A stretch of 64,000 bases of DNA from Bugula neritina (lineage: Eukaryota; Animalia; Bryozoa): NCBI GenBank assembly GCA_964035545.1, contig OZ037772.1:7052889-7116888 (forward strand). The letters run 5' to 3'. Under the pieces are notes generated by a model, which did no database searches, was not told where the DNA came from, and saw only the letters and a program-made list of their open reading frames with translations. Every line of letters begins with the position of its first letter. Positions within the stretch are counted from its first letter, which is position 1. A program made the translations under genes and the position numbers. Shown here one piece after another: positions 227 through 64,000 of this stretch.

Positions 227-2844
227 CATCTCATCTCTAACTCTTTCTATCTCTGCTGTCATGACTCCACATTTCTCTTCCTGAACATCCAACTCTCTCC
301 ACGCCTTCTTGTCCAGAGAATACACTTCATCTATTTTTTGTGAAACTCTCTCCAGTTTACCTCTGAGATACTCATTCACTTCCACTTTCAGGGATGTAAG
401 AGACTTGAAGTCATGTTGACCTCCATCTACAATGTACATCAAAATCTTACCACAACATTCTTTATTCCTGACTGTATATGAAAAGCTATCATATACGCTA
501 TTTTTTGATAAAAGTACACTTTATAAGTGTACTTTTGAGATATGATGTTCAGCATAGCTTGGATAATATACAGTATTAGGGTTGTATTGTACTCAAAACA
601 CTTTAAATAGTAAAGTAATGTATGCCTTAACTGGAAAGAGTAAACAAAACAACTGACTTCCAAATACATTTTTTTCAAGAAAAAAGAAAAAACATTATAG
701 AACAATCGTTTTGCCTTTTTGAAATACTTTTTTTTAATCTTAGCCATTTACAAAATAAAGAAGAAAAAATATGTTTCAAATTCCTTATTTTTAGAAGGCC
801 AAAACTAGTGCTACTCAGAAAGTGTGAAGTGTTATAATGAATATCTCCATTGTGTTATCCACAAAATGCCAACTAAGCCTATATGGCACCACTAAACATA
901 CCAAGAACGCCTTCATGATGACAATGACCAGAAGCCTTAGCTACTTTTAAAACTCTGGCAAAATTTTCTTGTGCATCATAGGAAATATAATATGCTTTTA
1001 GTAAATGCTTGACTATTTTCAAGTACAGATATTACAGACATAATTTCTTATAACTCAACCACCTTTACCAGCTTTTTAAAAGTCATCATTATTAATTTAT
1101 TAAAATTCAATGTGAAGTAGTTAAAGTAACTGAAGAACATCACATGTGTTATAGTCAGCTCATGAGTACAGCTGGTGATACTGTAAGAAGGAGCAATTAG
1201 CGCTTCAACTTCTGTGGTTTCTTAACAACTGATCATTAACAGGTAATCTACAATAATTAACTTTCCTCTAATAGTTGGTATAACTTATAAGTTACTACAA
1301 TATTACCTGTACAATCTTCTTCATCAATCTCACATTCAAAGCAGATCAGTTTATCACACTTCTTGCAAGCTCTCACCAAAACTTCTTTATGGTGTTCACA
1401 TGTTGGTTTATTGAAGTTTGTTGGTGAGCTCTTGTAGACATCAATACTCACTACTTTGTGAGAATCCCCAAGAAATGTCTTATGAACCTATAGTAGTTTT
1501 TGTGAAAATCAATATAAATAACATATTCACATTGGCAAACTTATCAAAGAATCAAATTTCTTCACGCAGATATAATATATACTTCAGCATTTGTACTATA
1601 TAACATATTGTAGATTTCATTTAATGATTTTGTCTATAAAGCAAGTAGAACCATTACCATTAATATTGTAAATAAATCAATTTGGAGATGCAGTAGTTGA
1701 ACTATACCTGTTGATGTTGAGTACAGAACATAACTTCACACTTTACACAGTAGCATGTAGCTATTTGACCTTGACATCCATCAGCTGTGCAGTACAGAGT
1801 ACCAGAGTCACCAGAGTCTATGGTAACCTTTGGTAGACCTTCAATCTCCAGTGAGTCGTAAACTTTCCTGTAACATATTATTGAGTTTAACAATACAGCT
1901 TTTGGACAGTTGTGTGTGCATGTACAGGTCACTTTATATATCATGTTTTGGAAGTAACAGCCCATCCTATAATCACTTGTTGACGGTAATTGTTTAAAAT
2001 GGAAATTTCTGACAAGGTACGTTACTTCAAATCACTCAATATAATTATACAAATCAATCGGAGACAATTGGGTAGAGTAATTGGATAAATTTCAATAGAG
2101 CATAACTATTTTTAATCAGGACTTAAATCAGATACTTTTATATCATTTTTTCAACTACTGCATCTCTCTTCAGGAAATCCCAAAATTAGACTGCAGCGTC
2201 TCGTAACATCAGCTATATATAGAGTTGAAGAGTCACTTATCTTTAATTATGTTTCAACTTGTTAATGGTTATTTATCTGCTGCAATTCACTTGTCGGGTT
2301 TGTAATTTATCCGAATAAAGTAATTATTATAATATATTTTATTTAAACACACAAGAATTTATCTCTCAGGAATAAAATCACCAAAACTAGCAGTTAACTT
2401 TTAGCAAAACTCTTCGTAAAAAAAACAAAAACTTTAAAAACCTAACTCCGTAGTTAATCTTAAACAAACACAAAACAAATTTGAAAAATTAGTGTGACAC
2501 AGCAAAATTGAATTTAATAAGACTTTCTATAAAAAAGACATCTAATGAATATTATTGCAGTTAAACAAACTTGTTTTTTTTTCTTAGCTAACACAACCAG
2601 CAACGTTTTTTCGATTTTTTTTATTTTGGAGTTGTCCACGTTCACTTTAGAATATTGTGTAGATTATACTTTTTACTCACCCACAAGTAGGGCAGGTCAC
2701 AGTTTTATGTTTACTGTAATGTCCTTGGATACAACTCAAACAGAATACATGCTGACAAGGCAGCTCTCTTGGATCTCTCATATCATCCCTCCTAGAGACA
2801 CAATAACCACACTCATACCATTCGGGTAATTGCTGGGCAGCCAT
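227..2844 (-). CDS. TRIM-family gene A (RING, B-box1, B-box2, first coiled-coil exon); 3' part lies outside the window
   Basis: Exons 2844-2681 (MAAQQLPEWYECGYC..CQHVFCLSC..CPTC, C3HC4 RING), 1867-1708 (B-box1), 1487-1307 (B-box2), 426-227 (coiled coil). GT-AG sites and phases 2/0/1/0 match the paralogs. Confidence 0.9.
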
Positions 2845-3043
2845 CTTTCTTAATTTCTGACCTATAACAACAAAACACTCAATTTTTTAAACAGCTTGCA
2901 CGCTCTTATGTTGTCATATCATTGTGTAAATTATATAAACATAAAAGTCATATTACTTTACAAAGTATTTAAACTTTATGCTATTTCAAGTCAGTAAAAC
3001 GTAACTCAAACTATCAGTAACTAATTAAAAATTTAAAACTCAC

Positions 3044-62700: not shown

Positions 62701-64000
62701 CTAAAAATCTTTTCTTTGAACTGATCAAAGTTTACCATATAAAGTCTGAGCTTGAAACAAAGCTGAAAATGTAATTAAGTCTAAATGCATTCATATAAAC
62801 CAAGTAAATTGTCTTTTCGAACTCATATTATTTCAGATAAAAAGAATAACCAATGAGAGTCAAGAGCTGATTGACAGAGTTACAAACCACAAAGCTAAGG
62901 TGACTAATCAGGTGGAAGATTTCTACAACAAGCTGATGCTGAAGAAAGATGGGTTGGAGAAGACACAAGCTGAGGTACATCGTCTGCTGAAAGATGGTCA
63001 TGTGACTGAGAAGATCAGACAGAAGAAGAGAGTAACAGAAGAGATGAACAGACATGATGCAGATAGACTAGATAACTGTGAACTTGTTGATCCGCCAACT
63101 GTAATTAATACAGGTTTGTGAAGTTTTTATTAGAAAATATCTTGGCTATAACAATCAGAAAACATCTGCCAGTTAGTTGGCTCTCTCAAAATGATGACTC
63201 ACCATATTTCATTATGGTACATTTTAAATAATAAAGTAGTATGTATCTCATATCACTACCTACATACAAGTATATGCTGTGAGCAGCAAGCACATTACAT
63301 ATGCTGAAAGATCATAATTATTTCTCAAAGAAGCTGCTAGAGACCTACAACTGTTAGTCATTACATTCCATGTGTAGCCTCTACTGCATGACAATAACTT
63401 TTACTTTAAATCATGTTGATAATTCACTTTGCAGTTTGTTTATTGAAGTTGAAAAATTACAGTATCAATAAATTATTATTTTTTCGTTGTATATGACGAG
63501 CAGCGTTTTAACTTAATATCTCCTGCCAAACCATTATATGCATTACTATATTATACGAAGGGCACACGCACACACACATTTAAACACATACATAAATACA
63601 TACTGCAGTACATACGCATATACCTGACATGCACATTATATGCATGTACACACATAGATTAGACATATGTATATAATCTTTAATAATTACAAGCATATAT
63701 AAGCAAAAATATACAACTTTTGTAGCAATTACATCAGATGATTATCTCATTTTCTTATTTATAGATTTATTCTAACCATCATAAAATCAGGAAACATTTT
63801 TGAAAAAATAAAATATACTTTCTAATAAAAATTGATTTCAAATAAACATATTAAGTGATTACCACTATATAGCATTTTACAGGTCAAATCACAAGTAAAC
63901 TGCTGAATGTTAGTCTAGTAACAGTTCCTTCTTCACTGACATTCATATCTGAACATGAGACAAATGGACAGTGTATGTCAGCTCATCACAGACAAGATGG
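59756..64000 (+). CDS. TRIM-family gene F, runs off the window in exon 6
   Basis: Exons 59756-59919, 60330-60489, 60987-61167, 61783-61982, 62837-63113, 63883 to window end; GT-AG, conserved phases. Confidence 0.92.
60549..60712. repeat. (CA)n microsatellite in intron 2 of gene F
   Basis: Seen directly. Confidence 0.96.

Follow-up and report, generated by a model that had tools for sequence, protein, structure and literature searches.

A TRIM-NHL gene array on chromosome 8 of the bryozoan Bugula neritina with a conserved RING exon and a probably diversifying propeller face

Introduction

NHL domains have so far been known chiefly as conserved binders of RNA or protein in development. The TRIM-NHL proteins that carry them (TRIM2, TRIM3, TRIM32, TRIM71/LIN-41, Brat, Mei-P26, and NHL-2) make up class VII, subfamily C, of the tripartite-motif (TRIM) family (PMC3503706). 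Also known are TRIM arrays with a diversifying B30.2 domain (TRIM5 and finTRIM) and large TRIM repertoires in invertebrates, and a tripartite-motif gene in oysters is mentioned in PMC7064767. In this study, we analyzed a stretch of 64,000 nucleotides (hereafter the window; C8:7052889-7116888, contig OZ037772.1) from an assembly of 216,009,554 bases of the bryozoan Bugula neritina, a genome of 216.00 Mb with 9 chromosomal pseudomolecules (PMC11480708), and found that it holds part of a large array of TRIM genes predicted to end in an NHL propeller. What is new here is a bryozoan array and, probably, an NHL face that diversifies among its copies.

Bryozoan immunity is a nearly blank field. Our literature search found no paper on a bryozoan TRIM array or on selection on an NHL propeller face, and tripartite-motif genes go unmentioned in both Bugula genome papers.

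Results

Gene family and domain identity

By tblastn of the window's open reading frames (ORFs) against the window itself, followed by splice-site placement, we detected six TRIM-type paralogs, of which A, B, and C lie on the minus strand and the other three (D, E, and F) on the plus strand (Table 1). Three of these (B, C, and E) are complete, each with seven coding exons in the order RING, B-box1-like, B-box2, two putative coiled-coil exons (CCa and CCb), exon 6 with propeller blades 1-5, and exon 7 with blade 6. Exon lengths are constant among copies (164 nt, or 170 nt in gene E, then 160, 181, 200, 277, and about 669 nt), exon phases are identical in all of them (2, 0, 1, 0, 1, and 1), all 30+ modelled introns are GT-AG with conserved phases, and most copies retain seven intact exons with all splice sites. 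A sequence-only reading of this DNA had counted six paralogs whose head combines a RING and a B-box with a coiled coil (RBCC); the six TRIM-type genes are there, but the full RING/B-box head is found only in A, B, C, E, and F, as gene D is truncated. The seven propeller exons that it had listed are all present (B, Cx, C, D, Dx, E, and F), though Cx is a fragment and F is cut by the window end.

The head of these proteins is recognized directly by Pfam. The RING exon matches zf-C3HC4 at 32.8 bits (cut-off 21) and zf-RING_2 at 31.4 bits, with all eight zinc ligands retained in 17 copies, and the B-box2 exon matches zf-B_box at 25.2 bits (cut-off 24.1). The exon in the B-box1 position is rich in Cys and His, with only weak Pfam matches to IBR and Tc5, and CCa and CCb together (about 160 aa) contain abundant E, K, Q, and L but no proline, and have no Pfam domain. 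The propeller exons gave only sub-threshold Pfam matches to SBBP, SGL, and COPA; the same scan returned no SPRY match, consistent with a C-terminal NHL propeller rather than B30.2. A propeller profile built from 86 relatives matched the NHL domains of TRIM3 (3.6e-22), TRIM2 (2e-17), TRIM71 (9e-16), Thin, and Brat among sequences in the PDB (all five with E in the range 1e-22 to 1e-9), and it also matched the designer Pizza proteins and WD40 proteins. Language-model look-alikes of the propeller were NHL clusters as well, mostly molluscan.

Structure prediction pointed to the same fold. The AlphaFold2 (AF2) model of gene C exon 6 (predicted local distance difference test 94) has five complete blades, and its matches among known structures were the nidogen YWTD propeller (Z 20.1) and Mei-P26, Brat, TRIM2, and Lin41 (Z about 19 over about 205 residues). 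Foldseek against the PDB gave only generic WD40/propeller matches (TM about 0.6), and VIA-align was more telling. A model of residues 340-619 of XP_067933727 (P0046), a homologue from the cheilostome bryozoan Watersipora subatra, has 24 strands and therefore six blades; this protein is colinear with the Bugula propeller through the exon 6/7 junction and extends about 39 residues past the exon-6 ORFs. Its top match was the NHL domain of TRIM2 (Z 25.2, 241/278 residues, root-mean-square deviation 2.8), followed by Brat (24.8), Lin41 (24.7), and Mei-P26 (24.5), and then by NHL-2 and TRIM71. Based on colinearity with this six-bladed homologue, the window genes are predicted to form six blades too.

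Exon 7 would supply the sixth blade. It is about 134 nt long (about 42 aa), lies 300-1000 bp downstream of every propeller exon, Cx and Dx included, and has an AG acceptor, the correct phase, and an intact frame in 19/19 copies seen. The exon-6 ORFs end a few codons past a conserved S-P-(M/S)-G motif, directly after which comes a donor, G/GTAAGA or G/GTACGG. A reading in which the gene ends with exon 6 and its propeller has only five blades was rejected on account of the six-bladed Watersipora homologue and the conserved exon 7.

Between CCb and the propeller there is no filamin/Ig domain, only a linker of about 15 residues to the first strand. TRIM32 likewise has no filamin domain, so its absence does not exclude these proteins from the TRIM-NHL class. 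With RING and B-box2 found by Pfam and NHL by profile and structure, the window genes are predicted to encode TRIM-NHL E3 ubiquitin ligases of about 595 aa without a filamin domain, their ligase activity being a prediction from the domains. The earlier proposal of TRIM ligase paralogs with an NHL-type propeller thus held up, and the profile search and structure prediction that it had called for identified the propeller as NHL, though the Pfam NHL model itself stayed below threshold.

Relatives of this propeller are rare in public protein data, with 135 among 1.84 billion representatives. Those with names are all from Watersipora subatra: XP_067933727, XP_067941719 (P0025), XP_067951224 (P0144), and XP_067943270. 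A homologue search with the Watersipora propeller returned only two Watersipora proteins. XP_067933727 and XP_067951224 have Pfam RING matches, the former with a sub-threshold B-box as well, and XP_067941719 has no Pfam RING or B-box match. Their propellers are only 25-41% identical to those of the Bugula array, and the name of XP_067933727, 'E3 ubiquitin/ISG15 ligase TRIM25-like', is an automatic label, as TRIM25 itself has a B30.2 domain.

The family extends far beyond the window. A check of its size across the genome showed it to be very large, with at least 136 propeller exon matches, at least 124 RING matches, and at least 150 B-box2 matches. The window lies in a propeller array of about 35 genes over about 600 kb of chromosome 8 (C8 6.63-7.22 Mb); these copies, which form propeller group 1, share 64-83% protein identity (most 71-83%) and are accompanied by RING exons of 93-100% identity. 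Group 2 holds about 13 copies of about 50% identity (C8 9.31-9.42 Mb), and group 3 about 80 copies of about 25% identity, mostly at C8 0.1-4.7 Mb. B-box2-like exons about 2.5-3 kb upstream of the propellers in this last region indicate that the distant copies are also B-box-propeller genes, and a second, larger family, predicted to be of the TRIM-propeller type, occupies the first third of chromosome 8. These distant propeller exons (about 80 or more) are spaced 30-70 kb apart and are closely alike among themselves. To the left, 200 kb of flanking DNA holds 12 more tandem genes, all on the plus strand, with a 13th beginning there.

Divergence and selection among paralogs

We compared 15-17 paralogs (17 of the about 35 array copies) from the window and the 200 kb left flank (Table 2). 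The RING exon, described in the sequence-only reading as nearly invariant, is indeed 93-100% identical at the protein level among 30 array copies. The ratio of nonsynonymous to synonymous divergence (dN/dS) is far higher in the propeller exon than in any of the others.

Table 2. Divergence by exon. dN and dS are mean pairwise values among 15-17 paralogs; maximum-likelihood (ML) omega was estimated under GY94+F3X4.
Exon	dN	dS	dN/dS	ML omega
RING	0.044	0.177	0.25	0.21
B-box1	0.151	0.466	0.32	0.42
B-box2	0.087	0.526	0.17	0.25
CCa	0.130	0.642	0.20	0.29
CCb	0.115	0.323	0.36	0.45
Propeller exon	0.123	0.176	0.70	0.85

The variation of the propeller, which had appeared patchy on first reading, is concentrated in alternate loops. 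We assigned loops from the AF2 topology, an up-and-down meander in which successive loops alternate between the two faces. In gene C exon 6, the face-1 loops are positions 27-29, 46-48, 64-68, 86-87, 110-117, 130-133, 149-155, 170-171, 190-194, and 211-215, which are the D-A and B-C loops of the modelled propeller. By WD40/NHL convention the D-A/B-C face is the top, and Brat and LIN-41 bind RNA through it. Pairwise omega reached 1.53 in the face-1 loops but only 0.51 in the remaining loops and 0.50 in the strands, and the ML estimates were 1.55 for the face-1 loops, 0.34 for the face-2 loops, and 0.64 for the rest of the exon. Propeller dN/dS is therefore not uniformly below 1. A likelihood ratio test (LRT) of omega = 1 in the face-1 loops gave 2dlnL 4.9 (p 0.027). 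Among eight disjoint nearest pairs, the same loops carried 173 nonsynonymous versus 30 synonymous changes, in excess of the neutral share (binomial p 0.003) and strongly different from the rest of the exon in the same pairs (Fisher p 1e-7). These results suggest that selection probably keeps one propeller face different between copies.

Exon exchange, duplication, and decay

The genes are mosaics, as different exons of one gene have different nearest paralogs. For propeller exons, the closest partner is at most 92% identical in DNA, whereas the other exons have partners at 94-99%, often at 97-99%. Synonymous divergence averages 0.18 in the RING and propeller exons versus 0.47-0.64 in B-box1, B-box2, and CCa. 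The former pair thus shows about one third of the value of the three intervening exons, and it is being homogenised or was spread more recently. Decay is visible alongside, in the truncated gene D, the fragment Cx, and three left-flank genes, one of them without coiled-coil exons, one without RING, and one with a stop in CCb; several propeller exons of the array also have stop codons. We are confident that this is a germline TRIM-NHL multigene family evolving by tandem duplication, inversion (at the head-to-head junction of C and D), exon-scale exchange, and decay.

Gene D has lost RING, B-box1, and half of B-box2, its cut falling at the (AC)n run 28712-28819. We observed that rearrangement breakpoints coincide with microsatellites at this run, at which gene D is cut exactly, at 34460-35748, and at 24779-25177. 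The second of these lies in the intron of Dx and comprises 1.3 kb of repeats with units of 10 and 18 bases, and the third is a 400-base (AG)n run directly upstream of the RING exon of gene C.

Two extra cassettes of exons 6 and 7, Cx and Dx, had been read as duplicated terminal exons. Both exist, Dx intact and Cx as a fragment, but the propeller exon is not terminal, as exon 7 follows every copy. Part of intron 5, exons 6 and 7, and the 3' flank were duplicated in tandem (31031-34285 versus 34274-37892), with Dx as the second copy. The two tandem copies are only about 80% alike, and Dx is 89% like the unit of another paralog; judged from these similarities, it looks like the product of unequal crossing-over between paralogs. 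The gene in front of Dx is D, without RING or B-box1, and Cx is truncated at its 5' end, has no acceptor, and is preceded by GGT repeats. The idea that such cassettes form a repertoire system therefore proved weak, with a unit behind a truncated gene and an acceptor-less fragment better seen as by-products of crossing-over. Even so, Dx may serve as an alternative 3' end.

Exon 6 ends in one of two discrete variants of its last strands, …YVFADNIKTCYIISPMG and …YVSGxxLKSLYIISPSG, which separate C and E from B, D, and Dx. Each variant is paired with its own exon-7 type and its own donor (GTAAGA or GTACGG), and the variants are common to paralogs that differ elsewhere. One left-flank gene has two exon-7 copies after one propeller exon, at 63585-63698 and 64776-64901 of the flank (C8:6683585 and C8:6684776). 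Five paralogs belonging to one subfamily carry in intron 2, about 35 bases downstream of the B-box1-like exon, a second but partial copy of its 3' half (L001:8022-8087, and the same position in the genes at left-flank 89897, 135569, 156557, and 185573); it is absent from the window genes.

Expression and upstream regions

RNA evidence came from contigs of one unchallenged RNA run (X1, 2016, labelled symbiont metagenome) over the gene B region. The contigs are confined to exons, with zero depth in every intron bin, and they join 11548 to 11936 and 13442 to 13827, which are two of the modelled introns of gene B. Many of them are 90-99% identical, so they record transcription of the family rather than of gene B specifically. 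The TRIM-NHL family is transcribed and spliced as modelled.

The sequence-only reading had also proposed repeated promoters of the IRF/NF-kB type. Gene B is preceded by a module with a perfect kB palindrome, a TATA-like box, and an element resembling an interferon-stimulated response element (ISRE), with a possible leader-exon donor nearby at about 14292; no other copy of this 270-base module was found in the 264 kb of window and left flank. The kB consensus occurs in only two places in the window, 14500 and 25830, and the kB-like element of gene C recurs at the homologous upstream place of one left-flank paralog, the closest relative of C. The ISRE core was observed 7 times versus 3.3 expected, mostly in introns, and the strict ISRE 2 times versus 0.43 expected. 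Across the left 200 kb, some kB-like palindromes are close to gene starts and others are far from them. Upstream similarity follows subfamilies, and GAAATTGAAACT recurs at homologous upstream places within one of them; some motifs recur in this way because the flanks were duplicated along with the genes. A promoter module shared by the array was thus rejected, and the proposal of repeated immune-type promoters found no support, as motif counts are within chance, the gene B module is unique, and upstream likeness is found only within subfamilies. No contig of run X1 covers 13996-14560, the putative leader and promoter of gene B. IRF and Rel genes are present in the genome, which makes IRF/NF-kB induction possible, though unsupported.

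Other features of the window

The window DNA is about 32% G+C, AT-rich, and abundant in microsatellites. Between genes E and F lies a non-family stretch in which a 3.78 kb unit occurs twice in tandem (46482-50260 and 50265-54050). The two copies, each containing long AT and TC microsatellites, are 99-100% identical, and decayed retroelement ORFs with an aspartic-protease-like DSG motif (54266-54526) follow at 54.2-55.8 kb. Rfam gave no RNA family at gathering score within the window, and a hammerhead candidate (47082-47132 and about 50923) was unsupported at threshold.

Table 1. Features of the window. Positions count from the first base of the window; exons are listed from 5' to 3' of each gene.
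Feature	Positions	Strand	Exons or elements	Remarks
Gene A	227-2844	-	RING 2681-2844; B-box1-like 1708-1867; B-box2 1307-1487; CCa 227-426	5' part only; remainder lies before window start
Gene B	8240-13990	-	RING 13827-13990; B-box1-like 13283-13442; B-box2 13002-13182; CCa 11936-12135; CCb 11272-11548; propeller blades 1-5 8746-9417; blade 6 8240-8373	Complete, 595 aa
Gene B upstream module	14371-14510	-	Perfect kB palindrome 14500-14510; TATA-like at about 14418; ISRE-like GAAAATGAAACT 14371-14382
Cx	16608-17429	-	Propeller fragment 17013-17429; own exon 7 at about 16608-16747	Fragment starts at residue about 104
Gene C	18533-24680	-	24517-24680; 23946-24105; 23294-23474; 22476-22675; 20611-20887; 19172-19840 (propeller); 18533-18666	Complete, 594 aa
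kB-like palindrome	25830-25840		GGGGATTCCCC	About 1.15 kb upstream of gene C
Gene D	28819-33494	+	28819-28891; 29504-29703; 30538-30814; 32363-33031 (propeller); 33361-33494	5'-truncated; begins within B-box2 directly after (AC)n run
Dx unit	34274-37892	+	Exon 6 35990-36658; exon 7 36993-37126	Both exons intact with splice sites
Gene E	39654-45892	+	39654-39823; 40078-40237; 40974-41154; 42166-42365; 42840-43116; 44638-45306 (propeller); 45765-45892	Complete, 594 aa
Non-family stretch	46482-55800		3.78 kb tandem duplication, then decayed retroelement ORFs
Gene F	59756-64000	+	RING 59756-59919; 60330-60489; 60987-61167; 61783-61982; 62837-63113; 63883-64000 (propeller start)	Cut by window end

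Discussion

Our best explanation of the whole, which we hold at about an even chance, is a germline birth-and-death repertoire of TRIM-NHL genes with a diversifying binding face. Unequal crossing-over and inversion would grow and shrink the array, and gene conversion would maintain similarity in the RING and in the framework of the propeller, with selection keeping the binding-face loops different; with the scaffold converted and the loops selected, each paralog would bind a different target. By analogy with other TRIM proteins, dimers would form through the coiled coil, a paralog-specific target would be bound at the variable face, and the RING would ubiquitinate either that target or itself, with degradation or signalling as the outcome. 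We suggest only tentatively, at slightly under an even chance, that the targets may be pathogens or mobile elements, that is, fast-evolving intracellular antagonists such as viruses, mobile elements, and microbes. This reading in terms of immunity or antagonists is the weakest step, based on the selection pattern and on analogy alone. Doubtful in our view is its widest form, in which more than 100 cytosolic TRIM-NHL ligases on one chromosome would be an NHL-based counterpart of TRIM5 and finTRIM for the intracellular recognition of viruses, mobile elements, and microbes, and in which exon 6/7 cassettes might add heads.

Several observations weigh against such a repertoire. Omega exceeds 1 only modestly (p about 0.03 in the loop class of 17 paralogs), face 1 was chosen as the more variable of the two loop parities after the column table had been made, the definition of its loops rests on a predicted structure, and recombination among paralogs violates an assumption of the single-tree ML test. 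In exon 7, the face-1 loops show no excess, with an omega of 0.41 over 17 codons. The Pfam NHL model (PF01436) had no match at E up to 1 in five propeller exons and none at E up to 0.01 in the full-length Watersipora relatives. RNA support is at the level of the family rather than of single paralogs, and the exon 6/7 junction and the leader exons lie outside the contigs. Finally, RNA is what the NHL domains of Brat and LIN-41 bind, which leaves room for targets other than pathogen proteins.

If the loops were simply unconstrained, with omega near 1, the array could be the product of neutral birth and death in a redundant family that is homogenised and eroded. Such neutrality would fit a bootstrap interval of face-1 dN/dS that reaches 0.97, an LRT p of only 0.027, the exon 7 loop omega of 0.41, the many truncated or stop-bearing copies, and the richness of the array in microsatellites and mobile elements. 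We consider it unlikely, however, because the loops of the opposite face are equally exposed and yet constrained (omega 0.34 versus 1.55), and because the independent pairs, at 173:30, lie above neutrality (p 0.003). Most copies, moreover, keep seven intact exons and all splice sites, and no propeller pair is near-identical though other exons often are. An interferon-like array of restriction factors induced through IRF/NF-kB, its repertoire widened by duplicated terminal cassettes, would agree with the perfect kB palindrome and ISRE-like element near a TATA-like box upstream of gene B, the kB-like palindrome upstream of C and its closest relative, the recurrence of GAAATTGAAACT at homologous upstream places in one subfamily, the IRF and Rel genes in the genome, and the acceptor and two intact exons of Dx. 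Yet motif counts within chance, a gene B module without a second copy, upstream regions alike only within subfamilies, kB-like palindromes far from any gene start, and a putative leader without RNA contig coverage all make it quite unlikely, as do the position of Dx behind a gene without RING and B-box1, its look of an unequal crossover, and the missing acceptor of Cx.

The remaining alternatives concern what the variable face would bind. In fold, the propeller is nearest to the RNA-binding NHL domains of TRIM2, Brat, Lin41, and Mei-P26, its variable loops lie on the D-A/B-C face that is the RNA face of Brat and LIN-41, and mobile elements surround the array. All of this could point to RNA-binding regulators of the Brat, Mei-P26, or LIN-41 type whose variable face would read RNA motifs and which would have multiplied to repress different endogenous or transposon transcripts. 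Since canonical RNA-binding TRIM-NHL genes are single-copy and conserved, and the filamin domain of TRIM2, TRIM3, and TRIM71 is here replaced by a linker of about 15 aa, we regard this as distinctly improbable. Recognition of self or partners, whether in colony fusion, kin recognition, or the control of a bacterial symbiont, is suggested by the large polymorphic multigene families typical of allorecognition and by a colonial host with a bacterial symbiont, the gene-bearing RNA run itself being labelled symbiont metagenome. Known invertebrate allorecognition molecules sit on the cell surface, though, whereas the protein models have no signal peptide or membrane segment, which indicates cytosolic proteins, and recognition of this kind is thus very improbable.

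Under a germline repertoire with a diversifying face, the TRIM strategy of joining a constant ligase to a sensor that diversifies would have arisen independently on an NHL propeller instead of B30.2. The array would then offer a clear example of concerted scaffold evolution combined with diversifying selection on loops, and it supplies defined hypervariable loop positions as candidates for target specificity.

Among known systems, TRIM-NHL ligases have the order of RING, B-box, coiled coil, and six-bladed NHL propeller that is predicted for the Bugula genes, and they match best in structure (Z 23-25 over 239-251 aligned residues) and give profile matches as well. They differ in that the Bugula array has no filamin/Ig domain and does not reach the Pfam NHL model, in numbering at least 136 copies in Bugula versus a few conserved single-copy genes, and in a binding face that is conserved there and appears to diversify here. 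TRIM5alpha and TRIM22 of mammals and the finTRIM and bloodthirsty-like genes of fish have a recognition domain of the B30.2 (PRY-SPRY) type where Bugula has an NHL propeller, and their interferon induction and antiviral action have been demonstrated, whereas an immune role of the Bugula array is a suggestion. Lineage-specific TRIM expansions of other invertebrates resemble it in their large repertoires, linked by expression to antiviral responses in molluscs. With the mammalian and fish clusters, it shares tandem arrays of fast turnover, a conserved RBCC head, and, probably, positive selection focused on the surface loops of the C-terminal recognition domain; a conserved enzyme end joined to a sensor face that probably diversifies follows the same evolutionary logic as TRIM5 and finTRIM, as had been proposed from the sequence.

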